From positions 26,412,001-26,476,000 of the forward strand of contig NW_027361727.1 of the NCBI RefSeq assembly GCF_039654945.1: 64,000 nucleotides of DNA, in the 5' to 3' direction. Source of the DNA: Dendrobates tinctorius (lineage: Eukaryota). Below are positions 1,451 through 59,116 of this stretch, piece by piece. A model generated the notes under the pieces. It was not told where the DNA came from. It saw only the letters and a list, made by a program, of their open reading frames with translations, and did no database searches. The stretch's first letter is position 1, and every line of letters starts with the position of its first letter. A program made the translations under genes and the position numbers.

Positions 1451-3076
1451 AATCCATACTGTGCCTGACACCGTCTGAGCCTGCCTCCTGAGACATATAT
1501 TTTGAATGTGTACGCTATCCATACATGTTATCCGGGGATACGGTACCCTTTCTAACCTTTGTGCAATCACGTGCAATCCATACTGGGCCTAACACCGTCT
1601 GAGCCTGCCTCCTGAGACATATATTTTGAATGTGTACGCTATCCATACATGTTATCCGGGGATACGGTACCCTTTCTAACCTTTGTGCAATCACGTGCAA
1701 TCCATACTGTGCCTTACACCGTCTGAGCCTGCCTCCTGAGACATATATTTTGAATGTGTACGCTATCCATACATGTTATCCAGGGATACGGTACCCTTTC
1801 TAACCTTTGTGCAATCACGTGCAATCCATACTGGACCTGACACCGTCTGAGCCTGCCTCCTGAGACATATATTTTGAATGTGTACGCTATCCATACATGT
1901 TATCCAGGGATACGGTACCCTTTCTAACCTTTGTGCAATCACGTGCAATCCATACTGGGCCTAACACCGTCTGAGCCTGCCTCCTGAGACATATATTTTG
2001 AGTGTGTACGCTATCCATACATGTTATCCAGGGATACGATACCCTTTCTAACCTTTGTGCAATCACGTGCAATCCATACTGGGCCTGACACCGTCTGAGC
2101 CTTCCTCCTGAGACATATATTTTGAATGTGTACGCTATCCATACATGTTATCCAGGGATACGATACCCTTTCTAACCTTTGTGCAATCACGTGCAATCCA
2201 TACTGGGCCTAACACCGTCTGAGCCTGCCTCCTGAGACATATATTTTGAGTGTGTACGCTATCCATACATGTTATCCAGGGATACGGTACCCTTTGTAAC
2301 CTTTGTGCAATCACGTGCAATCCATACTGGGCCTAACACCGTCTGAGCCTGCCTCCTGAGACATATATTTTGAATGTGTACGCTATCCATACATGTTATC
2401 CGGGGATACGGTACCCTTTCTAACCTTTGTGCAATCACGTGCAATCCATACTGGGCCTAACACCGTCTGAGCCTGCCTCCTGAGACATATATTTTGAATG
2501 TGTACGCTATCCATACATGTTATCCGGGGATACGGTACCCTTTCTAACCTTTGTGCAATCACGTGCAATCCATACTGTGCCTGACACCGTCTGAGCCTGC
2601 CTCCTGAGACATATATTTTGAATGTGTACGCTATCCATACATGTTATCCAGGGATACGGTACCCTTTCTAACCTTTGTGCAATCACGTGCAATCCATACT
2701 GGGCCTAACACCGTCTGAGCCTGCCTCCTGAGACATATATTTTGAATGTGTACGCTATCCATACATGTTATCCGGGGATACGGTACCCTTTCTAACCTTT
2801 GTGCAATCACGTGCAATCCATACTGGGCCTAACACCGTCTGAGCCTGCCTCCTGAGACATATATTTTGAATGTGTACGCTATCCATACATGTTATCCGGG
2901 GATACGGTACCCTTTCTAACCTTTGTGCAATCACGTGCAATCCATACTGTGCCTGACACCGTCTGAGCCTGCCTCCTGAGACATATATTTTGAATGCGTA
3001 CGCTATCCATACATGTTATCCAGGGATACGGTACCCTTTCTAACCTTTGTGCAATCACGTGCAATCCATACTGGGC
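1451..3076. repeat. 124-bp tandem repeat (~13 copies) internal to the hAT element
   Basis: Unit aatccatactgggcctaacaccgtctgagcctgcctcctgagacatatattttg...gtgcaatcacgtgc recurs with an exact 124-bp period and few substitutions. Confidence 0.97.
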
Positions 3077-3921
3077 GTGAGAACGGCTGGCGAGCTGTTA
3101 AGCAAGCTACAGCACCTGTCCAGACAAGTACAGGGATTCCCTAGCGAGGAGACTTATTTGATTGTTTTCAATGTTGGGACAGCAATTTTTGGGGAGCACT
3201 ATACTCTGGAGAATGATAGATGGGGCCCACCATACACTGGAACATTCCAAAGGTGGACATCAGACACTGGAGCAGCATTTACAGGGCCCATTATACACTA
3301 GAGCATTAGAAATGGGGCCCATTATGTTTGGAGCATTATTTGGGCCCATAAGACAGTGGAGCTTCATCCATGGGGACCAACATATACTGTAGCATTATGT
3401 GGAGCTCATCATATACTGTTTCAAACATTATATGGGACCAATGATTCTGTATGGAGAAATAGATGGGCCTTGTCATGAGATGTAAAAAGTGAGGTATTTT
3501 TCATTGTACTATACCGCTATTTATCTGCCGTATCGGAGCATGATGAGTTGTGGTATGTGTTAAAGGGGCGCTCTTTCGCCCATGGCACATGAAAACCTGC
3601 AGCCAGCCCTCCCCCCCACAACTTTAGCCAAATAACCCCCATTTTTCAGTGAGTAACTTGTATTATGAAGTTAATTAAGGTTGACAAGCTTAAGTAAGAA
3701 GAATTGATGCTTTTGGCATTCAAATGGGCACTGTAGGTGTGTTTCCTGTCCTCCTCTCACTGCCGACTTTTATTCCCCATTGACTTACATTGGGTTTCGT
3801 GTTTCGGGACGACCCCGACTTTTCCCTATAATCGGACGATCTTGCTCGACCCGACTTTTGGAAAAGTCGGGTTTCACGAAACGAAACGCGACCCTAAAAA
3901 AACAAAAGTCGCTCAACTCTA

Positions 3922-4797
3922 CGGTTCAGAGTCCATTACCATTGACGGTTCAGAGTCCATTATTACTGCAGTGTGATCTCTGTTCACTGACATGGAAAGC
4001 TCAGAGTCCATTATAATGTTTGTATCTGTTGCAGACATACATTCACTAGCACCAGTGAGCGGGGTCTCACACACAGCACTGAGCGGGGTCTCGCACACAG
4101 TGACAGTACAGGGGACATTTACTTCATCACTTACAGGAGCTGAGCTCCATTCATTGCTGCACACAGAGTCCACTGCGGTTAACCCCTCGGTTGCTGACAC
4201 ACTTTCCTCTGTAGCGCTCACAGCATTGTCTGCTGCCTCAGACCCCTCACATTGTGCGGCTGATATAAGTGCTGCATTTCTTACCAGACATCCTTGCCCC
4301 ACACTGTGCACAATTTCAGATTTAATGTCCTTATTACTAATGGAGTGTTTTCTATTCTCCTTCTGGGCTCTGGCTCCCCTCTTTTTCTCCATAGCCCAAG
4401 TTTCCTTTCTGGGCACAGAGTTCACATCTATGTCCAGGTTTCCTTTCCGAATGTCCAGCTCTCGTCTGCAAACATCCAGGCTCTCACATTTCATCAGTTT
4501 TATCTTTGGATTAGTCTCATTCTTAATTTCATCTTGTAATTTGCTGATTTGCATTTCCAGCTTAAAAATGCTTTGCCTTGTAACTTTACCACTCAATCCA
4601 GCAACATAACAAGCAGGTTTAGAAGACTGACCAGCCACCATTTCCAGCTTTCCATTACCATCAGGTCCATGCGGCAGGCCACACTCCAGGCTAGGGGCTT
4701 TCCCTGGATCATTAGCCCAGCTTCCCTCCCCTCCAACTGGGTCAGAAGCCATGCCTCCGCCCTGCTGGGAGCTCACAAACACACGTCTATCCTCTCC
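3922..4797 (-). mobile_element. 5' portion of a Tx1-like non-LTR retrotransposon (ORF1 N-terminus, ATG at 4752), truncated by the hAT insertion
   Basis: Uninterrupted ~277-aa frame with a predicted coiled coil and Ser/Glu-rich repeats, cut exactly at the hAT TIR. Its 5' end GAGAGGATAGACGTGTGTTTGTGAGCTC and N-terminus MASDPVGGEGSWANDPGKA resemble those of the element at 9421 (GAGAGGTTGTGTGTTTGTAGCTC; MSGASPGGGHPGRGNSPSKA). The diagnostic zinc-knuckle domain is not in the window. Confidence 0.6.
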
Positions 4798-7700
4798 TAT
4801 GGACAAGAATATAACTACTATAATACTGCTCCTACGTCCAAGAATATAACTACTATAATATTGCTCCTATGTACAAGAATATAGCTACTATAATACTGCT
4901 CCTATGTACAAGAATATAACTACTATAATACTGCCCCTATGTACAAGAATATAACTACTATAATACTGCTCCTATGTACAAGAATATAACTACTATAATA
5001 CTGCCCCTATGTACAAGAATATAACTACTATAATACTGCTCCTATGTACAAGAATATAACTACTATAATACTGCTCCTACGTCCAAGAATATAACTACTA
5101 TAATATTGCTCCTATGTACAAGAATATAGCTACTATAATACTGCCCCTATGTACAAGAATATAACTACTATAATACTGCTCCTATGTACAAGAATATAAC
5201 TACTATAATACTGCTCCTATGTACAAGAATATAACTACTATAATACTGCTCCTACGTCCAAGAATATAACTACTATAATATTGCTCCTATGTACAAGAAT
5301 ATAGCTACTATAATACTGCCCCCTATGTACAAGAATATAACTACTATAATACTGCCCCTATGTACAAGAATATAACTACTATAATACTGCCTCCTATGTA
5401 CAAGCATATAACTACTATAATACTGCCCCTATGTACAAGAAGATAATTACTATAATACTGCCCCTATGTACAAGACTATCACTACTATAATACTGCCCCT
5501 ATGTACAAGAATATAACTACTATAATACTGCTCCTATGTACAAGAATATAACTACTATAATACTGCCCCTATGTACAAGAATATAACTACTATAATACTG
5601 CTCCTATGTACAAGAATATAACTACTATAATACTGCCCCTATGTACAAGAATATAACTACTATAATACTGCTCCTATGTACAAGAATATAACTACTATAA
5701 TACTGCTCCTACGTCCAAGAATATAACTACTATAATATTGCTCCTATGTACAAGAATATAGCTACTATAATACTGCCCCTATGTACAAGAATATAACTAC
5801 TATAATACTGCTCCTATGTACAAGAATATAACTACTATAATACTGCTCCTATGTACAAGAATATAACTACTATAATACTGCTCCTACGTCCAAGAATATA
5901 ACTACTATAATATTGCTCCTATGTACAAGAATATAGCTACTATAATACTGCCCCCTATGTACAAGAATATAACTACTATAATACTGCCCCTATGTACAAG
6001 AATATAACTACTCTAATACTGCCTCCTATGTACAAGCATATAACTACTATAATACTGCCCCTATGTACAAGAAGATAATTACTATAATACTGCCCCTATG
6101 TACAAGACTATCACTACTATAATACTGCCCCTATGTACAAGACTATCACTACTATAATACTGCTCCTATGTACAAGAATATAACTACTATAATACTGCTC
6201 CTATGTACAAGAATATAACTATTATAATACTGCTCCTATGTACAAGACTATAATTACTATAATACTGCCCCTATGTACAAGAATATAACTACTATAATAC
6301 TGCTCCTATGTAAAAGAATATAACTACTATAATACTGCTCCTATGTACAAGAATATAACTATTATAATACTGCTCCTATGTACAAGACTATAACTACTAT
6401 AATGCTGCCCCTATGTACAAGAAGATAATTACTATAATACTGCCCCCTATGTACAAGAATATAACTACTATAATATTGCCCCCTATGTACAAGAATATAA
6501 CTACTATAATACTGCCCCTATGTACAAGAATATAACTACTATAATACTGCCCCCTATGTACAAGAATATAACTACTATAATACTACCCCTATGTACAAGA
6601 ATATAACTACTATAATACTGCTCCTATGTACAAGAATATAACTACTATAATACTGCTCCTATGTACAAGAATATAACTACTATAATACTGCTCCTATGTA
6701 CAAGAATATAACTACTATAATACTGCTCCTACGTCCAAGAATATAACTACTATAATATTGCTCCTATGTACAAGAATATAGCTACTATAATACTGCCCCC
6801 TATGTACAAGAATATAACTACTATAATACTGCCCCTATGTACAAGAATATAACTACTATAATACTGCCTCCTATGTACAAGCATATAACTACTATAATAC
6901 TGCCCCTATGTACAAGAAGATAATTACTATAATACTGCTCCTATGTAAAAGAATATAACTATTATAATACTGCTCCTATGTACAAGACTATAACTACTAT
7001 AATACTGCCCCTATGTACAAGAATATAACTACTATAATACTGCTCCTATGTATAAGACTATAACTACTATAATAAAGCCCCTATATACAAGAATATAACT
7101 ATTATAATACTGCTCCTATGTACAAGACTATAACTACTATAATACTGCCCACTATATACAAGAATATAACTAAAATAATACTGCTCCTATGTACAAGAAT
7201 ATAACTACTATAATACTGCCACTATGTACAAGAATATAACTACTATAATACTGCTCCTATGTACAAGAATATAACTACTATAATACTTCCCCTATGTACA
7301 TGAATATAACTACTATAATACTGTTCCTATGTAAAAGAATATAACTACTATAATTCTGCCCACTATGTATAAGACTATAACTACTATAATAATGCCCCTA
7401 TATACAAGAATATAACTACTGTAATACTGCCCCTATGTACAAGAATATAACTACTATAATACTGCCCACTATGTACAAGAATATAACTACTATAATACTG
7501 CCCACTATGTACAAGAATATAACAACTATAATACTGCCCCTATGTACATGAATATAACTACGATAATACTGCTCCTTTGTACAAGAACATAACTACTATA
7601 ATACTGCCCACTATGTATAAGAATATAACTACTATAATACTGCCCCTATATACAAGAATATAACTACTATAATACCGCTCCTATGTAGAAGAATATAACT

Positions 7701-9420
7701 ACTATAATACTGCCCCTATGTACAAGAATATAACTACTAAAATACTGCCCACTATGTACAAGATTATAACTACTATAATACTGCCCCTATGTACATGAAT
7801 ATAACTACTATAATACTGCTCCTATATACAAGAATATAACTACTATAATACTGCTCCCTATGTACAAGAATATAACGACTGTAATACTGCCCACTATGTA
7901 TAAGAATATAACTACTATAATACTGCCCCTATATACAAGAATATAACTACTATAATACTGCTCCCTAAGTACAAGAATATAACTACTATAATACTGCTCC
8001 CTATGTACAAGAATTTAACTACTATAATACTGCCCACTATGTATTAGAATATAACTACTATAATACTGCCCCTATGTACATGAATATAACTACGATAATA
8101 TTGCTCCTATGTACAAGAATATAACTACTATAATACTGCTCCCTATGTGCAAGAATATAACGACTGTAATACTGCCCACTATGTATAAGAATATAACTGC
8201 TATAATACTGCCCCTGGATGCAAGTATATAACTACTATAATACTGTCCCTATGTACAAGAATATAACTACTATAATACTTCTCCCTATGTACAAGAATAT
8301 AACTACTATAATATTGCCCACTATGTATAAGAATATAACTACTATAATACTGCCCCTATATGCAAGAATATAACTACTATAATACTGCCCCTATATACAA
8401 GAATATAACTACTATAATACTGCCCCTATATACAAGGATATAACTACTATAATACTGCCCACTATGTACAAGAATTTAACTACTATAATACTGCTCCCTA
8501 TGTACAAGAATATAACGACTGTAATACTGCCCACTATGTATAAGAATATAACTACTATAATACTGCCCCTATATACAACAATATAACTACTATAATACTG
8601 CTCCCTAAGTACAAGAATATAACTACTATAATACTGCTCCCTATGTACAAGAATTTAACTACTATAATACTGCCCACTATGTATTAGAATATAACTACTA
8701 TAATACTGCCCCTATGTACATGAATATAACTACGATAATACTGCTCCTATGTACAAGAATATAACTACTATAATACTGCTCCCTATGTGCAAGAATATAA
8801 CGACTGTAATACTGCCCACTATGTATAAGAATATAACTGCTATAATACTGCCCCTGGATGCAAGTATATAACTACTATAATACTGTCCCTATGTACAAGA
8901 ATATAACTACTATAATACTGCTCCCTATGTACAAGAATATAACTACTATAATATTGCCCACTATGTATAAGAATATAACTACTATAATACTGCCCCTATA
9001 TGCAAGAATATAACTACTATAATACTGCCCCTATATACAAGAATATAACTACTATAATACTGCCCCTATATACAAGGATATAACTACTATAATACTGCCC
9101 ACTATGTACAAGAATATAACTACTATAATACTGCCCCTATATACAAGAATATGACTACTATAATACTGCCCTTATGTACAAGAATATAACTACTATAATA
9201 CTGCCCCTATATACAAGAATATAATTACTATAATACTGCTCCAATGTACAAGAATATAACTACTATAATACCGCTCCGATGTAGAAGAATATAACTACTA
9301 TAATACTGCCCCTATGTACAAGAATATAACTACTATAATACTGCCACTATGTACATGAATATAACTACGATAATACTGCTCCTATGTACAAGAATATAAC
9401 TACTATAATACTGCCTCCTA
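4794..9420. repeat. 35/36-bp AT-rich satellite, left array (~130 copies)
   Basis: Unit TATGTACAAGAATATAACTACTATAATACTGC(T/C)CC, with a variable C-rich segment. Confidence 0.98.
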
Positions 9421-12400
9421 GCTGAGAGGTTGTGTGTTTGTAGCTCTCCTGATGTCTGGAGCAAGCCCAGGGGGAGGCCACCCTGGGCGGGGTAACTCCC
9501 CAAGCAAGGCCCAGGCTTCCAGGCCTAGACTTGGAAGTAACGCTCAAGTTGTGTCTAAGGCGGATGCAAGTCCCAAAGTTGTTTCTGAGGGAAAGAAAGC
9601 TCAGAATGGAAGCAGCAGCAGCAAGAAAGATGAAGCTGTGAAAGTGCAAAAAGTAACGGAACAAGGAAAAGCCATGGCTGTGGGTAAGAAAGTTCCGGTT
9701 AAGCAGTCGGCCAGCCAAGGCAAACAGAGTGAAGGACAACTAGGAGAAATCCAGAAGAAATCTACTGGTGAGAAGCTGAATGGAGGAAAGCAGCCTGCAG
9801 CTCAGGAGGTGCCATCACCAACTTCAGGTGTGCAGCTGACTCCCAGCAGACAGAGGAGAACCTCACTGGAGAGACAGACGCTCCAGGAGAACCTGCAGCA
9901 GAAGCATGTGGTGGCCAGCATAGCGAGCTCTGGGCGCACAAGGTCGCAGTCAGGTGGCAGCAGTAAAAGTGCTGTGGAGCCTGGAATCACGAAACCAGCG
10001 GTGGTGAAAGTTAAGGAGACGTCTGGTTTCAAGCATCCAGGGACATTGCTGAAAGCAGGATCCCAGGAGGAGACGCCATGTGCACCCGAGCTTCAGATCG
10101 CAGAGGAGATCCCAGGACTGGTCAAGAGGCTCGGTGAGTTACAGCAGCACAAAGACTTGCTGCAGAAGCAAATAGACATGGGCTATAAGGTAAAGGCTGC
10201 TAATCCTGGTGGAGATCACACCTTTTGTGATCAGACTCTGAACATGCTTGGCATACAGCTGGCAAAAGTGGTGACGGACATGGACTGTGTCCTAGAGAAG
10301 ATGGGGCCCCTGGCAGAGACTTATAGGAGCCAGGAACTGTTTATGTCACACAAGCAGGACTCTGCAGGTTCCAGCTCAGACATTGTCCCAGGTGAGCCCC
10401 AGAAGCCGGTGCGGCCAGTGCTGCAGCCTGCAAGTTTCTGCTTCCAAAAGGGTCAAATACTGCAGCCGCAGCAGCATGTTATGCAGATTCCATCAGGTGT
10501 ACCACAAGTCTCAGAATGCCCAGCACAGCAGCCTGCAGCAGATTCCAAGCAGCAGCATGGACTGCACTTTCCAGCAGAGGGACTACAAGTCTCAGAATGC
10601 CAAGCACAACAGTTGGGCAGTGGACATGTGCCGGTCATTTCTGATGGTGCCCAGCAGGGCCCTGATGCTGGGGATAACCGCACTGTATCTGGGGGGTTGG
10701 GGGCTTGGCACAGTATCTTTGGTGGACGCTGCACAGTCTGATAATGACATTGATGCTGATGATAACAATGTGCATGATAATGTCTGTGATTTCCCCCCTT
10801 TAATTTCAAGCACACAAGGTGTGGCTGCCCCTCCTGCTGCAGACCTTCACCCCGTCAGTCAACCCAATGTGACCCCGCACGGTACCCCCAGTAATGCCTG
10901 GAGTCGTGGTGCTCCGTCCTTTACCTCTGGTACCAACTATACAGGCCAGGCGTTTAAAAGGAGAAACGTGGTGCGTTTCCGGCACAGAGGTGCCAAGGAG
11001 GACCTACCAGACAGGAGATTTGTCGTCAGGGAGCTCTTGTGCCACCAGATGGGGTTTGTGCCAGTCAGCATCCTGGAGTGATTAATCTTCCAGACAGGCA
11101 GGGCTATGATGTCAGCTTTAAGCTCATGTCTGACCTGGACAGATTCTGGTCTAGTTTCCCCAAGTTTAGAGACACGGAGGGCTGGAGTAAGTTCAGCTTT
11201 ATTCCTATCTCTAAGCCAGATACTGTCACCGTAAATGTCATCTTCTGGAATGAGTCTGTTCCCCCGCAGGTGTGGCTCCGGAGGCATTGTGACCTGGTCT
11301 CTGACCTCACCAAAAGCAGAGACAGTGATGGGATCTGGACGGGAGGGTGGCGGGTTTTGGTGAAACTGCGCCAATGCAATAACATCACTGCCCATTTACC
11401 CAACTCCTTCTTTATTGGGAGGGAGAGGGGTGTGTGTTTCTATCCAGGGCAGCCTCGTAAGTGCTTTAAATGTGGCAAGGCAGGTCACCTGGCAATTACC
11501 TGTACTGTGGTGAAGTGCAACCTGTGTGGGGAGGTCGGCCATCTAGCTGCAGACTGCCAGAACATCAGGTGCAACCTCTGTGGGAAGATCGGTCACCCTC
11601 ACAGGGACTGTCCAGACGCCTGGCACAATATCTGTAAGGACTTTCCTGACGAGGACTTGGTGGCAGGGGCAGAGATTCTGGAGGAGGCAGCTTTACTGTC
11701 AGGGGAAATACTGACCAGACCAGAGGTCCACCAGGGGTCTACTCAGCTAACACCAGAGCAGCAGGGTTCAGAGAGAGAACAGGGGAGAATGGAGGTTGTA
11801 CCTCAGGGGCAGCGGTCACAGGAAGGCATTACTTCAGTGCTACCATCTGTGTCTGAAGAGTATAGCAATAATCAGAAAAGGAAGAAAAAGGACAAGGCCT
11901 CCCGTAAACCTGAGGGGTATGACACTGGCCAAGGAGCCGGGAAGAAATTCCAGAGTTCTGCAGGTGTAATGGTCGTATCTAACAGGTTTGATGTTCTGTC
12001 TGAGTCTGACGGCGATTTTGAAGATGACCTTAAGAGAATTGACGCAGAGTGTGATAGGGACGTAGAGGACTGTCCTCCGCCAAAGCGGAAGCCCTTACCT
12101 GAGGGCACTCGGGTAGAGTCTGAGATGGAGACCGGTGGTGAACAGAATAACTCCGACTCAGATCTGTGACGCTGTCAACCAGATAATGTCCAAACTCAGA
12201 TAGGGAAAATCATTAGGAGAAATTAGGAAATGTTAAGATAGAGAAGGATGAGTCACTGGGTAGGAACATGATGAGCTCTGTTTGCAAAGTGTTTTTTTTT
12301 TTTTTTTTTCTCTCCTCAAACTAGGAGTATGGACTCTAAGTTAATTTGATATGTATAAACTGGATATGTAATGAATGTATGTACAATCCTAGTGAATTCA

Positions 12401-12455
12401 GTTTTGTATTATTGGAGGAATGTTATTTGGATTTGTTTGGTTTTTACAATAAAAA
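9421..12455 (+). mobile_element. Tx1-clade non-LTR element, ORF1-only (non-autonomous), inserted in the 35-bp satellite
   Basis: 31-nt 5'UTR, ORF1 from 9452 to 12169, a ~290-nt T-rich 3' region ending in AATAAAAA, and satellite on both sides with overlapping TGC(C/T)CCTA (imperfect TSD). No endonuclease or RT sequence is present. Confidence 0.88.
9452..12169 (+). pseudogene. Tx1-type ORF1 (ZCCHC3-like: coiled coil, RRM-like region, 3 CCHC knuckles) with two frameshifts (~10690-10740 and ~11075)
   Basis: Joined frames give FKRRNVVRF...YDVSF...VIFWNESV...WLRRHCD...DGIWTGGWRVLVKLR...HLPNSFFIGRERGVCFYPGQPRKCFKCGKAGHLAITC..CNLCGEVGHLAADC..CNLCGKIGHPHRDC. This closely resembles the ZCCHC3/Tx1 ORF1 domain (recognised from memory). 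Confidence 0.88.
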
Positions 12456-15090
12456 TTGCCCCTATGTACAAGAATATAACTACTATAATACTGCCCACCA
12501 TGTATAAGAATATAACTACTATAATACTGCCCCTATGTACAAGAATATAATTACTATAATACTGTCCCTATGTACAAGAATATAACTACTATAATACTGC
12601 CTCTATGACCAATAATATAACTACTATAATACTGCCCCTATGAACAAGAATATAACTACTATAATACCGCTACTATGTAGAAGAATATAACTACTATAAT
12701 ACTGCCCCTATGTACAAGAATATAACTACTATAATACTGCCCACTATGTACAAGAATATAACTACTAGAATACTGCCCCTATGTACATGAATATAACTAC
12801 TATAATACTGCTCCTATATACAAGAATATAACTACTATAATACTGCTCCCTATGTACATGAATATAGCTACTATAATACTGCTCCTATATACAAGAATAT
12901 AACTACTATAATACTGCTCCTATATACAAGAATATAACTACTATAATACTGCCCCTATGTACATGAATATAACTACGATAATACTGCTCCTATGTACAAG
13001 AATATAACTACTATAATACTGCTCCCTATGTGCAAGAATATAACGACTGTAATACTACCCACTATGTATAAGAATATAACTACTATAATACTGCCCCTGT
13101 ATGCAAGTATATAACTACTATAATACTGTCCCTATGTACAAGAATATAACTACTATAATACTGCTCCCTATGTACAAGAATATAGCTACTATAATACTGC
13201 CCACTATGTATAAGAATATAACTACTATATTACTGCCCACTATGTACAGGAATAAAACTACTGTAATACTGCTCCTATGTACAAGAATATAACTACTATA
13301 ATACTGCCCCTTATACAAGAATATAACTACTATAATACTGCCCCTATATACAAGAATATAACTACTATAATACTGCCCCCTATATACAAGAATATAACTA
13401 CTATAATACTGCTCCCTATGTACAAGAATATAACTACTATAATACTGCCCACTATGTATAAGAATATAACTACTATATTACTGCCCACTATGTACAGGAA
13501 TAAAACTACTGTAATACTGCTCATATGTACAAGAATATAACTACTATAATACTGCCCCTTATACAAGAATATAACTACTATAATACTGCCCCTATATACA
13601 AGAATATAACTACTATAATACTGCCCCCTATATACAAGAATATAACTACTATAATACTGCCCACTGTGTACAAGAATATAACTACTATAATACTGCTCCT
13701 ATGTACAAGAATATAATTACTATAATACTGCCCTTATGTACAAGAATATAACTACTATAATACTGCCCCTATCTACAAGAATATAACTACTATAATACTG
13801 CCCCTATATACAAGAAAATATAACTACTATAATACTGCCCACTATGTACAAGAATATAACTACTATAATACTGCCCCTATATACAAGAATATAACTACTA
13901 TAATACTGCCCCTATATACAAGAATATAACTACTATAATACTGCTCCCCATATACAAGAATATAACTACTATAATACTGCCCACTATATACAAGAATGTA
14001 ATTACTATAATACTGCTCCTATGTACAAGAATATAGCTACTATAATACTGCCCCTTATACAAGAATATAACTACTATAATACTGCCCCTATATACAAGAA
14101 TATAACTACTTTAATACTGCCCCTATATACAAGAATATAACTACTATAATACTGCCCCTACTGTATATACAAGAATATAACTACTAAAATACTGTCCACT
14201 ATGTACAAGAATATAACTACTATAATACTGCCCACTATGTACAAGAATAAAACTACTATAATACTGCTCCTATGTACAAGAATATAACTGCTATAATACT
14301 GCCCCTATGTACAAGAATATAACTGCTATAATACTGCCCCTATATACAAGAATATAACTACTATAATACTGCCCCTATATACAAGAATATAACTACTATA
14401 TTACTGCCCCCTATATACAAGGATATAACTACTGTAATACTGCCCCTATGTACAAGAATATAACTACTGTAATACTGCCCCCTATGTACAAGAATATAAC
14501 TACTATAATACTGCCCACTATGTACAAGAATATAACTACTATAATACTGCCCATATGTACAAGAATATAGCTACTATAATACTTCCCCTATATACAAGAA
14601 TATACTATAATACTGCCCCCTATGTACAAGAATATAACTACTATAATACTGCTCCTATGTACAAGAATATAACTACTATAATACTGCCCCTATATACAAG
14701 AATATATCTACTATAATACTGCCCACTATGTACAAGAATATAACTACTATAATACTGCCCCTATGTACAAGAATATAACTACTATAATACTGCCCCTATA
14801 TACAAGAATATATCTACTATAATACTGCCCCCTATGTACAAGAATATAACTACTATAATACTGCTCCTATGTACAAGAATATAACTACTATAATACTGCC
14901 CCTATATACAAGAATATATCTACTATAATACTGCCCCCTATGTACAAGAATATAACTACTATAATACTGCCCCTATGTACAAGAATATAACTACTATAAT
15001 ACTGCCCCTATGTACAAGAATATAACTACTATAATACTGCTCCTATGTACAAGAATATAACTACTATAATACTGCCCCTATGTACAAGAA
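12456..15090. repeat. 35/36-bp satellite, right array (~74 copies)
   Basis: Same unit and orientation as 4794-9420. Confidence 0.98.
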
Positions 15091-15659
15091 AATACTGTCT
15101 TGTATTTCTGTAATTCATTGAAGTAATACGTTTGTGATTTTCTATTTTTATGTTCTCTCTATAATAACCTCATCGCTCAGAGTGTGCAATTTAATATTCC
15201 AAATAGTCCTATTTATCTGTTCATTTTCTTTTCGTTTTTACATGCTCAGTGAAATCAATATGGAAGTTCTCTCTATTGTGATGAGGTCAGTTTGTGTAAT
15301 GTAACAATATTTGCAGGACTTAATAGAATATTTGCTAAACATTGGTCTCATTAAGAGCTCGTGGCTTCTGGGTGTTTTCGATTTATAGTGCAATTCTTCA
15401 AAGTCTCCTGTAAGTTTCGGTGCAGTTCATAATAGGAGGACAAAGCAATTAATGGAACTATTTGGAAACGCTTTTACAGGGGCTGGAATTTTGCTGCATC
15501 TTTAAGTTTATATTTGAAAGGTTTATCAGTTTAGTTTATATAAAGTATACTTTTATTTTATACTTAGTTCAACAGATATATGTTGTAGTCATACCCTTAT
15601 CTGGAGTCTTTATAACTCTAAAATATTCACACCTGATTATTATGTCCTTTTTCGGTGTT

Positions 15660-25066: not shown

Positions 25067-25267
25067 TTGACAGACCCATGATGCAGTCGGTCCAGGTCCA
25101 AGAGTCTTCCCCCTGGCAACCCTACTGCGCAGCTAAATGGTTCCAGGCATGGAGCAGAGGAGGTAAACCCTTTCTTGTCCTTCTTGTGCTTCAACCCCTT
25201 ACATTAGTAGCAAGAGTAGGCATTTATATAGGTACACTTTAAACATCTGTCGGATGTTTTGCTGGAT

Positions 25268-26829
25268 TAGTATGGCCCCATGTGGGATCAGTATGGTCCA
25301 ATGTGGGATCAGTATGGTCCAATGTGGGATCAGTATGGCTCAATGTAGGATCAGTATGGTCCAATGTGGGATCAGTATGGTCCAATGTGGGATCAGTATG
25401 GTCCAATGTGGGATCAGTATGGCCCAATGTAGGATCAGTATGGTCCAATATAGGATCAGTATGGTCCAATGTGGGATCAGTATGGCCCAATGTGGGATCA
25501 GCATGGTCCAATGTGGGATCAGTATGGTCTAATGTGGGATCAGTATGGTCCAATGTAGGATCAGTATGGTCCAATATAGGATCAGTATGGTCCAATGTAG
25601 GATCAGTATGGCCCAATGTGGGATCAGTATGGCCCAATGTGGGATCAGTATGGCCCAATGTGGGATCAGTATGGTCCAATGTAGGATCAGTATGGTCCAG
25701 TGTAGGATCAGTATGGTCCAAGGTAGGATCAGTATGGTCCAATGTGGGATCAGTATGGCCCAATGTGGGATCAGTATGGTCTAATGTGGGATCAGTATGG
25801 TCTAATGTGGGATCAATATGGTCCAATGTGGGATCAGTATGGCCCAATGTGGAATCAATATGGCCCAATGTGGGATCAGTATGGCCCAATGTGGGATCAG
25901 TATAGTCTAATGTGGGATCAGTATGGTCCAATGTGGGATCAGTTTGGTCCAATGTGGGATCAGTATGGTCCAATGTGGGATCAGTATGGTTGAATGTGGG
26001 ATCAATATGGCCCAATGTGGGATCAGTATGGTCAAATGTGGGATCAGTATGGCCCAATGTGGGATCAGTATGGTCTAATGTGGGATCTGTATGGTCTAAT
26101 GTGGGATCAGTTTGGTCCAATCTGGGATCAGTATGGTCCAATGTGGGATCAGTATGGTCCAATGTGGGATCAGTATGGTCCAATGTGGGATCAGTATGGC
26201 CCAATGTGGGATCAGTATGGTCTAATGTGGGATCAGTATGGTCTAATGTGGGATCAGTATGGTCTAATGTGGGATCAGTTTGGTCCAATCTGGGATCAGT
26301 ATGGTCCAATGTGGGATCAGTATGGTCCAATGTGGGATCAGTATGGTCCAATGTGGGATCAGTATGGTCCAATGTGGGATCAGTATGGCTCAATGTGGGA
26401 TCAGTATTGTCTAATGTGGGATCAGTATGGTCCAATGTGGGATCAGTATGGTCCAATGTGGGATCAGTATTGCTCAATGTGGGATCAGTATGGTCCAATG
26501 TGGGATCAGTATTGTCTAATGTGGGATCAGTATGGTCCAATGTGGGATCAGTATGGTCCAATGTGGGATCAGTATTGCTCAATGTGGGATCAGTATGGTC
26601 CAATGTGGGATCAGTATGGTCTAATGTGGGATCAGTATGGTCCAATGTGGGATCAGTATGGTCCAATGTGGGATCAGTATGGTCCAATGTGGGATCAGTA
26701 TGGTCCAATGTGGGATCAGTATGGTGTAATGTGGGATCAGTATGGTGTAATGTGGGATCAGTATGGTCCAATGTGGGATCAGTATGGTGTAATGTGGGAT
26801 CAGTATGGTGTAATGTGGGATCAGTATGG
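25268..26829. repeat. 21-bp minisatellite (~74 copies)
   Basis: Unit ATGTGGGATCAGTATGGTCCA. Confidence 0.98.
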
Positions 26830-32375: not shown

Positions 32376-32394
32376 TGTCAAGACTGGCATGTCA

Positions 32395-32469
32395 AACCAG
32401 ATCTCACACTTTGCACTGATGAAGGGTAATGATCCCGAAACACAGTGTCTGCAAATTGAGATTCTGGTT
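32395..32469 (+). ncRNA. Type I hammerhead ribozyme (canonical core), retrozyme/PLE-type
   Basis: Stem I TTTGCA/TGCAAA, extended by aaccagatctca/tgagattctggtt; CTGATGA at 32416-22; stem II GGG/CCC; GAAA at 32437-40; minimal stem III CAC-A-GTG; GUC cleavage site at 32449. Confidence 0.85.
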
Positions 32470-32854
32470 CAGCTTTAATCTTAAATCATATGGCAAGGCT
32501 CGTTAAAGGGTCGATATTGACTTTTAGGATTGCTACATCCTATGGGTGGCACTAGAATTCTTTTGTATAAACACGTATATTTAAGCACATTCCCTAATCT
32601 GACTTTTTTCCTTTTCCCCCTGTTTTTCTCATTCCCTAGAAGCTGATCCCTTCGCTCAGTAGTATTTGGTATCTCCCACACAGTGAATATCCTGATACTG
32701 GCGAGTGTCAGGCTGCTGCCGCTTTATGTATAAGCCCCTATTTTTGTAACAGATGCTTACTTCACTTTCCCTCTTATTAACTATATATGCTGCAGAATAA
32801 GTCAGTGCCATATAAATAGCAATTATTATTATTACTATTATTGGCACTTTCAGG

Positions 32855-47197: not shown

Positions 47198-50100
47198 TAA
47201 TATCCCACATCATCCCGTCAGTCAGACCAACTGGAGTACTACCCCAAATATCCCACATCATCCCGTCAGCCAGAGCCACCGGACTACTACCCCTAATATC
47301 CCACATCATCCCGTCAGCCAGAGCCACTGGAGTACTACCCCTAATATCCCACATCATCCCGTCAGCCAGAGCTACCAGACTACTACCCCTAATATCCCAC
47401 ATCATCCCGCCAGCCAGAGCCACTGGAGTACTACCCCTAATATCCCACATCATCCCGTCAGCCAGAGCGACTGGACTACTACCCCTAATATCCCACATCA
47501 TCCCATCAGCCAGAGCCACCGGACTACTACCCCTAATATCCCACATCATCCCGTCAGCCAGAGCCACTGGACTACTACCCCTAATATCCCACATCATCCC
47601 ATCAGCGAGAGCCACCGGACTACTACCCCTAATATCCCACATCATCCCAACAGCCAGAGCCACCGGACTACTACCCCTAATATCCCACATCATCCCGTCA
47701 GCCAGAGCGACCGGACTACTACCCCTAATATCCCACATCATCCCGTCAGCCAGAGCCACCGGACTACTACCCCTAATATCCCACATCATCCCAACAGCCA
47801 GAGCCACCGGACTACTACCCCTAATATCCCACATCATCCCAACAGCCAGAGCCACCGGACTACTACCCCTAATATCCCACATCATCCCGTCAGCCAGAGC
47901 GACCGGACTACTACCCCTAATATCCCACATCATCCCGTCAGCCAGAGCCAACGGACTACTACCCCTAATATCCCACATCATCCCTTCAGCCAGAGCCACC
48001 GGACTACTACCCCTAATATCCCACATCATCCCGTCAGCCAGAGCCACCGGACTACTACCCCTAATATCCCACATCATCCCTTCAGCCAGAGCCACCGGAC
48101 TACTACCCCTAATATCCCACATCATCCCGTCAGCCAGAGCCACCGGACTACTACCCCTAATATCCCACATCATCCCTTCAGCCAGAGCCACCGGACTACT
48201 ACCCCTAATATCCCACATCATCCTGTCAGCCAGAGCCACCGGACTACTACCACTAATATCCCACATCAGCCAGAGCCACCGGACTACTACCCCTAATATC
48301 CCACATCATCCCATCAGCCAGAGCCACCGGACTACTACCCCTAATATCCCACATCATCCCGTCAGCCAGAGCCACTGGACTACTACCCCTAATATCCCAC
48401 ATCATCCCAACAGCCAGAGCCACCGGACTACTACCACTAATATCCCACATCATCCAGTCAGCCAGAGCCACCGGACTACTACCCCTAATATCCCACATCA
48501 TCCCGTCAGCCAGAGCCACCGGACTACTACCCCTAATATCCCACATCATCCCTTCAGCCAGAGCCACCGGACTACTACCCCCAATATCCCACATCATCCC
48601 GTCAGCCAGAGCCACCGGACTACTACCCCTAATATCCCACATCATCCCTTCAGCCAGAGCCACCGGACTACTACCCCTAATATCCCACATCATCCCTTCA
48701 GCCAGAGCCACCGGACTACTACCCCTAATATCCCACATAATCCCGTCAGCCAGAGCCACTGGACTACTAGCCCTAATATCCCACATCATCCCATCAGCCA
48801 GAGCCACCGGACTACTACCCCTAATATCCCACATCATCCCGTCAGCCAGAGCCACCGGACAACTACCCCTAATATCCCACATCATCCTGTCAGCCAGAGC
48901 CACCGGACTACTACCCCTAATATCCCACATCATCCCATCAGCCAGAGCCACCGGACTACTACCCCTAATATCCCACATCATCCCGTCAGCCAGAGCCACC
49001 GGACTACTACCCCTAATATCCCACATCATCCCGTCAGCCAGAGCCACCGGACAACTACCCCTAATATCCCACATCATCCTGTCAGCCAGAGCCACCGGAC
49101 TACTACCCCTAATATCCCACATCATCCCGTCAGCCAGAGCCACCGGACTACTACCCCTAATATCCCACATCATCCCGTCAGCCAGAGCCACCGGACTACT
49201 ACCCCTAATATCCCACATCATCCCGTCAGCCAGAGCCACCGGACAACTACCCCTAATATCCCACATCATCCTGTCTGCCAGAGCCACCGGACTACTACCC
49301 CTAATATCCCACATCATCCCGTCAGCCAGAGCCACCGGACTACTACCACTAATATCCCACATCATCCCGTCAGCCAGAGCCACCGGACTACTACCACTAA
49401 TATCCCACATCATCCCGTCAGCCAGAGCCACCGGACTACTACCCCTAATATCCCACATCATCCCGTCAGCCAGAGCCACCGGACTACTACCCCTAATATC
49501 CCACATCATCCAGTCAGCCAGAGCCACCGGACTACTACTCCTAATATCCCACATCATCCCGTCAGAGCCACCGGACTACTACCCCTAATATCCCACATCA
49601 TCCAGTCAGCCAGAGCCACCGGACTACTACCCCTAATATCCCACATCATCCCGTCAGCCAGAGCCACCGGACTACTACCCATAATATCCCACATCATCCC
49701 TTCAGCCAGAGCCACCGGACTACTACCCCTAATATCCCACATCATCCCGTCAGCCAGAGCCACCGGACTACTACCCCTAATATCCCACATCATCCCTTCA
49801 GCCAGAGCCACCGGACTACTACCCCTAATATCCCACATCATCCCTTCAGCCAGAGCCACCGGACTACTACCCCTAATATCCCACATCATCCCGTCAGCCA
49901 GAGCCACTGGACTACTAGCCCTAATATCCCACATCATCCCATCAGCCAGAGCCACCGGACTACTACCCCTAATATCCCACATCATCCCGTCAGCCAGAGC
50001 CACCGGACTACTACCCCTAATATCCCACATCATCCCGTCAGCCAGAGCCACCGGACTACTACCCCTAATATCCCACATCATCCCTTCAGCCAGAGCCACC

Positions 50101-53100
50101 GGACTACTACCCCTAATATCCCACATCATCCCGTCAGCCAGAGCCACCGGACTACTACCCCTAATATCCCACATCATCCCTTCAGCCAGAGCCACCGGAC
50201 TACTACCCCTAATATCCCACATCATCCAGTCAGCCAGAGCCACTGGCTACTACTCATAATATCCCACATAATCCCATCAGCCAGAGCCACCGGACTACTA
50301 CCCCTAATATCCCACATCATCCCGTCAGCCAGAGCCACCAGACTACTATCACTAATATCCCACATCATCCCGTCAGCCAGAGCCACCGGACTACTACCCC
50401 TAATATCCCACATCATCCTGTCAGCCAGAGCCACCGGACTACTACTCCTAATATCCCACATCATCCCATCAGCCAGAGCCACCGGACTACTACCCCTAAT
50501 ATCCCACATCATCCTGTCAGCCAGAGCCACCGGACTACTACCCCTAATATCCCACATCATCCTGTCAGCCAGAGCCAACGGACTACTACCCCTAATATCC
50601 CACATCATCCCGTCAGCCAGAGCCACCGGACTACTACCACTAATATCCCACATCAGCCAGAGCCACCGGACTACTACCCCTAATATCCCACATCATCCCG
50701 TCAGCCAGAGCCACTGGCTACTACTCCTAATATCCCACATAATCCCATCAGCCAGAGCCACCGGACTACTACCCCTAATATCCCACATCATCCCGTCAGC
50801 TAGAGCCACCGGACTACTACCCCTAATATCCCACATCATCCCGTCAGCCAGAGCCACCGGACTACTACCCCTAATATCCCACATCATCCTGTCAGCCAGA
50901 GCCACCGGACTACTACTCCTAATATCCCACATAATCCCATCAGCCAGAGCCACCGGACTACTACCCCTAATATCCCACATCATCCCGTCAGCCAGAGCCA
51001 CCGGACTACTACCCCTAATATCCCACATCATCCTGTCAGCCAGAGCCACCGGACTACTACCCCTAATATCCCACATCATCCCGTCAGCCAGAGCCACCGG
51101 ACTACTACCCCTAATATCCCACATCATCCCGTCAGCCAGAGCCACTGGCTACTACCCCTAATATCCCACATCATCCCGTCAGCCAGAGCCACCGGACTAC
51201 TACCACTAATATCCCACATCATCCCGTCAGCCAGAGCCACCGGACTACTACCCCTAATATCCCACATCATCCTGTCAGCCAGAGCCACCGGACTACTACC
51301 ACTAATATCCCACATCATCCCGTCAGCCAGAGCTACCGGACTACTACCCCTAATATCCCACATCATCCTGTCAGCCAGAGCCACCGGACTACTACCCCTA
51401 ATATCCCACATCATCCCGTCAGCCAGAGCCACCGGACTACTACCCCTAATATCCCACATCATCCCGTCAGCCAGAGCCACCGGACTACTACCTCTAATAT
51501 CCCACATCATCCTGTCAGCCAGAGCCACCGGACTACTACCCCTAATATCCCACATCATCCCGTCAGCCAGAGCCACCGGACTACTACCCCTAATATCCCA
51601 CATCATCCTGTCAGCCAGAGCCAACGGACTACTACCCCTAATATCCCACATCATCCTGTCAGCCAGAGCCACCGGACTACTACCCCTAATATCCCACATC
51701 ATCCTGTCAGCCAGAGCCAACGGACTACTACCCCTAATATCCCACATCATCCTGTCAGCCAGAGCCACCGGACTACTACTCCTAATATCCCACATCATCC
51801 CGTCAGCCAGAGCCACCGGACAACTACCCCTAATATCCCACATCATCCTGTCAGCCAGAGCCAACGGACTACTACCCCTAATATCCCACATCATCCTGTC
51901 AGCCAGAGCCACCGGACTACTACCCCTAATATCCCACATCATCCCGTCAGCCAGAGCCACCGGACAACTACCCCTAATATCCCACATCATCCTGTCAGCC
52001 AGAGCCACCGGACTACTACCCCTAATATCCCACATCATCCCATCAGCCAGAGCCACCGGACTACTACCCCTAATATCCCACATCATCCCGTCAGCCAGAG
52101 CCACCGGACTACTACCCCTAATATCCCACATCATCCCGTCAGCCAGAGCCACCGGACTACTACCCCTAGTATATGCCACATCATCCCGTCAGCCAGAGCC
52201 ACCGGACTACTACCCCTAATATCCCACATCATCCTGTCAGCCAGAGCCAACGGACTACTACCCCTAATATCCCACATCATCCTGTCAGCCAGAGCCACCG
52301 GACTACTACCACTAATATCCCACATCATCCCTTCAGCCAGAGCCACCGGACTACTACCCCTAATATCCCACATCATCCCGTCAGCCAGAGCCACCGGACT
52401 ACTACCCCTAATATCCCACATCATCCTGTCAGCCAGAGCCACCGGACTACTACCCCTAATATCCCACATCATCCCAACAGCCAGAGCCACCGGACTACTA
52501 CCCCTAATATCCCACATCATCCTGTCAGCCAGAGCCACCGGACTACTACCACTAATATCCCACATCAGCCAGAGCCACCGGACTACTATCCCTAATATCC
52601 CACATCATCCCATCAGCCAGAGCCACCGGACTACTACCCCTAATATCCCACATCATCCCGTCAGCCAGAGCCACTGGACTACTACCCCTAATATCCCACA
52701 TCATCCCATCAGCCAGAGCCACCGGACTACTACCACTAATATCCCACATCATCCAGTCAGCCAGAGCCACCGGACTACTACCCCTAATATCCCACATCAT
52801 CCCGTCAGCCAGAGCCACCGGACTACTACCCCTAATATCCCACATCATCCCTTCAGCCAGAGCCACCGGACTACTACCCCCAATATCCCACATCATCCCG
52901 TCAGCCAGAGCCACCGGACTACTACCCCTAATATCCCACATCATCCCTTCAGCCAGAGCCACCGGACTACTACCCCTAATATCCCACATAATCCCGTCAG
53001 CCAGAGCCACTGGACTACTAGCCCTAATATCCCACATCATCCCATCAGCCAGAGCCACCGGACTACTACCCCTAATATCCCACATCATCCCGTCAGCCAG

Positions 53101-59100: not shown

Positions 59101-59116
59101 CATGATCCTGTCAGCC
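47198..59116. repeat. 48-bp satellite, ~11.9 kb (~250 copies)
   Basis: Unit TAATATCCCACATCATCCCGTCAGCCAGAGCCACCGGACTACTACCCC, strongly C/A strand-biased. Confidence 0.99.

Follow-up and report, generated by a model that had tools for sequence, protein, structure and literature searches.

Target-specific families of the Tx1 clade of LINEs include Tx1L of Xenopus, Keno, Kibi, Koshi, Dewa and Mutsu. LINEs of this clade carry an APE-type endonuclease and target a single sequence within repeated DNA (PMC4640811). Elements that encode only an ORF1 protein have been described in two other settings. In mammals, HAL1 ('half-L1') is a non-autonomous element that encodes ORF1p only, having lost the ORF2 of its autonomous ancestor, and it has several origins (PMC5753468, citing Smit 1999 and Bao & Jurka 2010). 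At Drosophila telomeres, the target-restricted non-LTR element HeT-A encodes Gag (ORF1) without pol and needs the reverse transcriptase of a relative, while TAHRE has both pol and a HeT-A-like Gag (PMC5537684). Two further systems bear on the comparison: mammalian ZCCHC3, a restraint on L1 encoded by a single-copy host gene (PMC10351740), and the SINEs with LINE-derived 3' tails, which need the 3' end of the partner LINE for recognition by its reverse transcriptase (PMC5786205).

Here we describe an insert in a satellite of the poison frog Dendrobates tinctorius which, with a probability of roughly 0.7, is a decayed member of a multi-copy family that carries ORF1 alone and derives from an L1/Tx1-type LINE specific to the satellite. 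Like HAL1, it would be an ORF1-only LINE derivative that has lost ORF2; however, HAL1 has a mammalian L1 parent, a coiled-coil/RRM/CTD ORF1 and dispersed insertions, whereas the present element has an L1/Tx1-type frog parent, a ZCCHC3-like ORF1 (two RNA-binding domains and three CCHC knuckles) and one fixed satellite target. It resembles HeT-A in being target-restricted and ORF1-only, but HeT-A belongs to another clade (Jockey), needs no nicking when it is added at chromosome ends and performs a function for the host, whereas this element occupies an internal satellite target with a target duplication and has no known host role. Its relatives in Engystomops pustulosus insert, as the Tx1-clade families do, at one site of a repeated target; those families are autonomous and this element is not. 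With ZCCHC3 it shares PF23057, PF23058 and zf-CCHC, yet ZCCHC3 has neither LINE termini nor the long N-terminal helical extension present here. SINEs, finally, are short, have no coding sequence and rely on polymerase III for transcription, whereas this element retains a gene of ~900 codons. The literature searched contained no ORF1-only derivative of the target-specific Tx1 families and did not show this 35-bp satellite as a target.

Results

A discrete insert in a 35-bp satellite

The window (the whole 64-kb stretch of D. tinctorius DNA that was analysed) contains a discrete insert of ~3.04 kb, at 9421-12456, which breaks up a 35-bp satellite (TRF and sequence). The features of its setting are listed below in window coordinates.

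4796-9420, no strand: 35-bp satellite array, 5' flank (TRF: period 35, 131 copies, 90% matches)
9412-9420, plus strand: upstream copy of the apparent target-site duplication, TGCCTCCTA (sequence)
9421-9451, plus strand: 5' end and short 5' UTR of 31 nt, beginning GCTGAGAGGTTGTGTG as in the full-length Engystomops elements (alignment A2; 26/30 identical pairwise)
12457-12464, plus strand: downstream copy of the apparent target-site duplication, TGCCCCTA (sequence)
12457-15094, no strand: 35-bp satellite array, 3' flank (TRF: period 35, 74.6 copies)

The target duplication around the insert is imperfect (8-9 bp), its two halves differ, and the 9-nt monomer variant of the upstream copy is also present elsewhere in the array. 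Removal of the insert together with one copy of the duplication restores the single interrupted satellite monomer, and this restored monomer, combined with ends that match those of full-length elements, is the footprint of target-primed reverse transcription. The initial annotation of this DNA had described both termini as intact, and indeed both match the ends of the full-length relatives to the base (alignments A1 and A2). The element is present as a single copy within the 64-kb window, once in its 10-kb array, and belongs to no higher-order repeat.

A ZCCHC3-like ORF1 broken in this copy

The following features make up ORF1.

9452-10707, plus strand: ORF1 piece 1, with its ATG at 9452 and a long N-terminal extension (ORF list, translation; its start, MSGASPG, is also found in the ORF1 of Engystomops contig L006)
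10680-10735, plus strand: first frame change, at a 28-nt imperfect direct repeat with units from 10680 and 10708 (frames; repeat units)
10709-11076, plus strand: ORF1 piece 2, in another frame, with a linker and the first half of RBD_ZCCHC3_1st (Pfam PF23057 positions 1-37; 95% identical to P0001, a protein model of Ranitomeya imitator)
11076-11077, plus strand: second frame change, inside the first RNA-binding domain and private to this copy (contigs of runs X1, X6 and X16 are one letter longer, at full depth)
11077-12169, plus strand: ORF1 piece 3, with the second half of RBD1, RBD2, the CCHC knuckles, an acidic tail and the stop (Pfam; 89% identical to P0001)
11270-11271, plus strand: loss of three codons in RBD2 (P0001 has DIV; a loose contig end lies at 11270)

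Although ORF1 had initially been annotated as complete with ~900 codons, it is broken into three pieces, and ~905 codons are obtained only by reading these consecutively. On its sequence, this copy cannot make a full-length ORF1 protein, because of the two frame changes (near 10707 and at 11076/11077) and the 9-nt loss that removes three codons at 11270. The assignment of ORF1 as ZCCHC3-like was borne out by Pfam, which found PF23057, PF23058 and three CCHC knuckles; this domain order is split over frames here and intact in L006. Within piece 3, RBD2 spans 11237-11443 (a Pfam match of 69 residues against 72 profile positions), the three knuckles span 11462-11611 and the stop, TGA, is at 12167-12169. 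Piece 1 contains a conserved two-helix block at 10082-10342 (alignment A3), predicted by AlphaFold2 to form a helical hairpin (pLDDT 85).

The second frame change is absent from P0001, in which the frame is uninterrupted. At the first, a minority of the X1 contigs are longer by five letters after 10707, and the X6 and X16 contigs resemble this copy, without the length variant. A broken ORF1 may therefore be common to many copies, and the argument that ORF1 is needed would then be weaker. Coding differences among copies were synonymous in 17/38 and non-synonymous in 21/38 of those listed (p 0.003-0.03 versus neutrality), in a partial list with 51 differences outside it. When the ORF1 domain core was compared with that of L006, dN/dS was 0.07.

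Full-length relatives occupy the same satellite site

Three contigs of E. pustulosus (L003, L005 and L006) hold elements with both ORF1 and ORF2 in the same satellite, and their first and last letters are identical to those of the D. tinctorius element. This full-length kind has a ZCCHC3-like ORF1 of ~1000 codons (1011 aa in L006), the stop of which overlaps the start, MMMG..., of an APE-endonuclease/reverse-transcriptase ORF2 (Exo_endo_phos, RVT_1 and zf-RVT by Pfam in L006), and lies at one fixed position in this 35/36-bp satellite. This copy and four junction sets in the three contigs share one monomer position and one orientation, and the element is collinear with the autonomous LINE at both its 5' and 3' ends (alignments A1 and A2 against L003, L005 and L006). 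An APE-type endonuclease and a reverse transcriptase in the autonomous form, together with a fixed position and orientation in a repeated target, are as expected for the Tx1 clade.

The best ORF2 matches were unnamed reverse-transcriptase proteins of Xenopus tropicalis (54-58% identity), and the ORF2 homolog search returned no dendrobatid ORF2. Neither the 64-kb window nor the contigs shown contain an autonomous partner from D. tinctorius, and we infer the partner from the Engystomops elements. A reverse-transcriptase gene at 59777-62284 (minus strand) was considered for this role; it has a different C-terminus and 3' end, shows no similarity to the tail and is unrelated.

The tail retains the end of ORF2

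Two features follow the ORF1 stop.

12170-12278, plus strand: what is left of the final ~33 ORF2 codons, decayed and interrupted by stops and frame changes (alignment A1)
12279-12456, plus strand: 3' UTR (118/154 identical to the 3' UTR of L006)

The distance from the ORF1 stop to the element terminus, which reads AATAAAAAT, is 286 nt, in agreement with the ~290 nt initially annotated, and neither the ORF list nor Pfam revealed endonuclease or reverse-transcriptase domains within 9421-12456. Aligned to the full-length Engystomops relatives, the tail is collinear with their ORF2 end and 3' UTR (alignment A1). For the ORF2 remnant, 66/95 positions are identical to L006 (6445-6552), with a local score of 31 versus 15.9 +/- 2.6 for shuffles (reached by 1/2000), and an exact 16-mer is shared with contig L004. 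The 3' UTR scores 42 versus 19.9 +/- 3.0, a score reached by 0/2000 shuffles with the last 35 nt excluded; the tail shuffle tests overall gave 1/2000, 2/2000 and 0/2000. The 3' UTR includes a T-run (12292-12309), the conserved block ATGGACTCTAAGTTA (12329-12343) and a conserved terminal block with AATAAA (12439-12456). As the tail consists of the ORF2 C-terminus and the 3' UTR, the alignments show that ORF2 was taken out by a single internal deletion of ~3.3 kb that begins directly behind the ORF1 stop and leaves of ORF2 only its final ~33 codons; the junction is at 12169-12171. By the same alignments, the short form that it made keeps the 5' end, ORF1, 3' UTR and insertion site of the full-length kind.

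The proposal that this region fuses remnants of both the start and the end of ORF2 finds support as regards the end: LGEIRK and KIEKDESLGR both derive from the ORF2 C-terminus. The supposed start, MSKLR followed by a stop (12186), is C-terminal as well, aligning with ...SELRW..., which in the relatives stands ~25 codons short of the ORF2 stop. An ORF2-like similarity upstream of the ORF1 stop (P0078, E 0.24) was taken as chance, because all relatives have the conserved C-terminus of ORF1 here. Rfam gave no structured-RNA match in the whole window; the predicted fold of the 3' UTR is no more stable than that of shuffles (z +1.2), and that of L006 is only mildly more stable (z -1.8).

The deletion junction is shared by many copies

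The passage from the ORF1 stop into the tail is spanned, at a depth like that of ORF1 and with 0-1 differences, by contigs of four runs in two organisms; bridging contigs cover 11886-12282 in X1, 11888-12282 in X14 and 11917-12240 in X6, where the depth at the junction is 689 versus 665-940 for ORF1 contigs. No loose contig end among those listed falls at 12170-12300. The R. imitator protein model P0001 also crosses the junction (22/25 identical, E 6e-15). These contigs show a junction common to many copies in at least two organisms; the refuting condition named in the initial annotation, a junction unique to this locus, thus does not hold.

Between 0.33 and 0.67 of the element's words are held by 20 runs from 8 studies. 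A 100-aa C-terminal query against Logan found no short proteins, and a metagenome scan gave CCHC-knuckle matches only. In runs labelled 'RNA?', the element is at about the same relative depth as in DNA runs (X16) or very thin (X14).

Discussion

The family is best read, from its sequence features, as HAL1-like or HeT-A-like and non-autonomous. The suggestion that an ORF1-only, target-specific derivative of a Tx1/L1-type LINE exists as a family gains support from the shared junction and the common satellite site. Since the copying enzyme has been lost while the RNA-binding gene and both ends have been kept, the family probably spreads through trans mobilisation, with the enzyme of its full-length relatives. 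The short RNA would be transcribed and coated in cis by its own ORF1 protein, and the conserved 3'-terminal blocks would allow it to serve as a template for the ORF2 protein of the full-length partner; this enzyme would then nick the satellite at its usual site and insert the RNA copy by target-primed reverse transcription. The two frame changes and the 9-nt loss would have arisen later in this copy.

The main rival is that, after one deletion, the short form owed its multiplication chiefly to the dynamics of the satellite arrays that carry it (unequal crossing-over and segmental duplication) and not to retrotransposition in trans. As all known copies lie in one satellite, they could also have multiplied by unequal exchange within arrays, and this satellite is hugely amplified, with bin depths of 0.24-2.1 million versus ~700-900 for the element in X6. 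The non-identical halves of the 'target duplication' and the X6 and X16 contigs, which appear to have this copy's state at the first frame change, fit such passive amplification as well. However, the element stands alone in its 10-kb array, outside any higher-order repeat, its ends are exactly those of full-length elements, and the monomer is restored without the insert and one duplication copy. The synonymous excess in the listed differences among copies and the occurrence of the short form in two organisms plus R. imitator also speak against it, and we regard spread by array amplification as unlikely.

Two other readings had been put forward: that ORF2 was deleted once, at this locus and after insertion, or that its absence reflects a collapse of the assembly. 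Either would fit the single copy in the window. Both are rejected by the bridging contigs, which come from four independent runs in two organisms and whose origin from this very locus in every case is excluded by depth, and by the peptide encoded across the junction in P0001; we consider them highly improbable. Even less credible is a host gene domesticated from a LINE ORF1, as mammalian ZCCHC3 would suggest by its domain make-up and as the many frog gene models named 'ZCCHC3-like' might imply: where an intact, single-copy gene without transposon termini would be expected, this copy has two frame changes, LINE 5' and 3' ends, an ORF2 remnant and a satellite location, and the element is highly repeated.

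If the family is indeed an ORF1-only LINE derivative mobilised in trans, ORF1 might have been kept because its protein has to work in cis, on the RNA that encodes it, perhaps guiding the particle to the satellite, as HeT-A Gag does to telomeres, through the conserved helical N-terminal extension. The LINE-satellite pair and its half element would then be older than the split between poison frogs and leptodactylids. We offer this only as a tentative and rather doubtful extension.

The locus itself is an ordinary decayed family member; what this copy newly provides is a mapped deletion junction and a link to the full-length Engystomops elements. ORF1-only LINE derivatives are a natural experiment on the role of the ORF1 protein, in which a LINE RNA dispenses with its own reverse transcriptase but apparently not with its own ORF1. 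The present family would add a second example from vertebrates, one that differs in its type of ORF1 and has a fixed target in a satellite, and insertions at a predictable site make possible a direct test of the cis-preference of ORF1p and the use of ORF2p in trans. It also gives a view of the co-persistence of a LINE and its target satellite, the 35/36-bp repeat and the insertion point being common to two frog families.

Insertion in a satellite array

The element parts two arrays of a 35-bp satellite, and the features of this region are as follows.

4796-9420: 35-bp satellite, array 1
9421-12456: insert of 3,036 bp, parting the two 35-bp satellite arrays
11462-11611: three CCHC knuckles
12457-15094: 35-bp satellite, array 2

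The same part of the monomer stands on both sides of the insert (TGCCTCCTA as the last 9 nt before it, TGCCCCTA as the first 8 nt behind it), and a normal satellite monomer is regained once the insert and one of these flanking copies are taken away. The 8-nt and 9-nt versions of this monomer part are both present elsewhere in the array. The flanking copies are apparently an imperfect 8-9 bp target-site duplication. A single copy of the insert is found in the window.

The satellite (4796-15094) is nearly letter-for-letter conserved in a 36-bp version in Engystomops pustulosus (contigs L006, 1-75 and 6722-7056, and L003, 3550-3626), and the LINE insertion point within it is also conserved between the poison frog and this leptodactylid frog. 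The left edge of the array is adjoined, in opposite orientation, by the 5' portion of a related element (minus strand, 3919-4800). Its leader is similar (GAGAGG..GTGTGTTTGT.AGCTC), its N-terminal ORF of 295 aa has no Pfam hit, and the element ends abruptly at about 3919.

Structure of ORF1

The ORF1 ATG lies at 9452 and the first residues (MSGASPG) are those of the intact ORF1 of Engystomops contig L006. The initial annotation had described a complete ORF1 of ~900 codons; near-completeness holds, since joining the pieces gives about 905 codons, but the frame is broken: a first piece extends from 9452 to ~10707, a second, in a different frame, to 11076, and a third returns to the initial frame and ends with the stop codon at 12167-12169. 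In Pfam searches, the first ZCCHC3-type RNA-binding domain is split over two frames (profile positions 1-37 and 40-78), and the entire 72-position profile of the second domain, PF23058, is matched, three residues short. At 11270, this copy lacks the residues DIV of P0001, a Ranitomeya imitator gene model and the closest protein relative.

The first frame change falls at a 28-nt imperfect direct repeat (first unit from 10680, second from 10708). Among the sequencing runs with matching contigs, a length variant at this site is seen in a minority of X1 contigs and in none from X6 or X16. The second frame change, at 11076, is private to this copy, since contigs from three runs carry one additional letter there at full depth and P0001 continues through the site. 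In the N-terminal extension, the block 10082-10342 is 53% identical to Engystomops proteins and is predicted to form a two-helix hairpin (pLDDT 85); by analogy with the coiled coil of L1 ORF1p, it may be an oligomerisation module.

Full-length relatives and the deletion

Searching by word matches with the C-terminal piece of ORF1 returned 77 relatives, nearly all of them frog proteins sharing its domains, with P0001 the best at 89% identity and Leptodactylus, Anomaloglossus and Engystomops next at 60-67%. ORF1 is followed by ORF2 on six contigs, three from Engystomops pustulosus (L003, L005, L006) and three Logan contigs (L001, L002, L004). The L006 element is nearly intact, with an ORF1 of 1011 aa and an overlapping ORF2 of at least 1112 aa that encodes an APE endonuclease, a reverse transcriptase and a zf-RVT domain. 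The Engystomops elements lie in the 36-bp version of the satellite, with the orientation and monomer position of the window element, and share with it their first 16 and last 18 letters, the latter including AATAAA. On L003 (3273-3640), two full-length elements stand head to tail only two monomers apart, so insertions can be very dense in such arrays.

The region 12170-12278, crowded with stops and frame changes, aligns to the last ~33 codons of Engystomops ORF2 (...AVVSQILSELRWIKSLEIRK...LWRN...*; identity 66/95), with a local score of 31 against 15.9 +/- 2.6 for shuffles, a score reached by 1/2000 of them. The comparison with L004 scores 32 (2/2000 shuffles do as well), and the two share an exact 16-mer. 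The remainder, 12279-12456, aligns to the Engystomops 3' UTR (identity 118/154; score reached by 0/2000 shuffles with the last 35 nt excluded), and two blocks are identical to it, ATGGACTCTAAGTTA at 12329-12343 and the final 18 nt. Since the tail is collinear with the ORF2 end and 3' UTR of the relatives, a single deletion has removed about 1,100 codons (~3.3 kb); it begins within about 2 nt past the stop of ORF1 and leaves about 33 codons in front of the stop of ORF2. Of the fused ORF2 start and end proposed earlier for this tail, the end part is borne out, LGEIRK and KIEKDESLGR being ORF2-end remnants. The supposed start, MSKLR*, instead matches ...SELRW... of the ORF2 end, and ORF2 of the relatives begins MMMG... 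atop the ORF1 stop.

A family of ORF1-only copies

Between 0.33 and 0.67 of the element's sampled words occur in 20 runs from 8 studies and all of them in none, as expected if the contigs are other copies about 1-3% different. In four runs the contigs extend over the entire element. Those of X1 (11886-12282), X14 (11888-12282) and X6 (11917-12240) bridge the ORF1 stop-tail junction with 0-1 differences, the X6 contig at a depth of 689 compared with 665-940 for ORF1 contigs, and contigs of X16, from a second organism, also cover 12110-12214. No loose contig ends at the junction were found among the contigs listed. Independently of the runs, residues 437-461 of P0001 match the junction of the window element read out of frame (22/25 identical, E 6e-15), which places the junction in the Ranitomeya imitator assembly. 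The initial annotation had suggested looking for further copies with the deletion junction; it occurs in run contigs of two organisms and in P0001, and a one-off deletion at this locus and an assembly collapse are excluded, as the junction is bridged in several runs at ORF1-like depth and recurs in P0001. Depth is not copy number, but if X6 is shotgun DNA well below 1x, a rough estimate would be about a thousand copies or more.

Residues 434-540 of P0001 leave the ORF1 frame, cross the junction and enter a repeated PESVAEVLR-like peptide; this stretch appears to be an artefact of gene prediction on a decayed member of the ORF1-only family.

We compared natural copies directly, without a consensus. 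Synonymous changes make up 17 of the 38 listed coding differences between this copy and the run contigs (51 further differences lie outside this partial list), against a neutral expectation of 24-29% (p = 0.003-0.03 by transition bias). Relative to Engystomops ORF1, the domain core has a dN/dS of 0.07, the helical block 0.15 and the N-terminal part 0.58, with dS saturated; these ratios show that the lineage has long been constrained, and do not speak for the time since ORF2 loss.

Other repeats in the window

A fragment of a hAT transposase C-terminus (Dimer_Tnp_hAT, E 5e-10) lies beside a 124-bp tandem repeat of 13 copies, 97% alike (3-1031 and 1451-3076). Both strands of a 21-bp tandem repeat (75 copies, 25264-26829) contain ORFs, the longest 510 aa, that are almost certainly not genes, and a 48-bp satellite (250 copies, 47198-59116) is likewise a source of long spurious ORFs. 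Beside the latter, on the minus strand (59777-62284), an unrelated LINE ORF2 of 835 aa encodes an endonuclease and RT; its product has the C-terminus ...KTHLFRLAY, and the 3' end behind the ORF is a different one. A hammerhead-ribozyme candidate at 32377-32560 stayed below the gathering score of every Rfam family, and the Rfam search of the whole window gave no hit.

Discussion

We have demonstrated the architecture, deletion map, common insertion site and multiplicity of an ORF1-only LINE family in frogs. The Tx1 clade includes target-specific APE LINEs (PMC4640811); in the papers searched, we found no ORF1-only derivative of a target-specific APE LINE and no report of this 35-bp satellite as target. 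The closest kinds are mammalian HAL1, an ORF1-only L1 with several origins (PMC5753468), and HeT-A of Drosophila, a target-restricted element that is Gag-only and has a pol-bearing relative in TAHRE (PMC5537684).

Mobilisation would most likely begin with a short RNA, whose 31-nt 5' UTR suggests an internal promoter or read-through from the satellite. ORF1p would bind its own RNA in cis, the ORF2p of a partner element would recognise the conserved 3' blocks, and the partner enzyme would nick the satellite at the fixed site and reverse-transcribe the RNA there, producing the 8-9 bp duplication. The main alternative, that copies multiply along with the satellite array itself, is unlikely: the LINE ends are exact, the interrupted monomer is restored when the insert is removed, the element occurs only once in this array, and ORF1 differences show a synonymous excess, all of which favour retrotransposition. 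The locus is a real but ordinary member of the family, decayed at three places.
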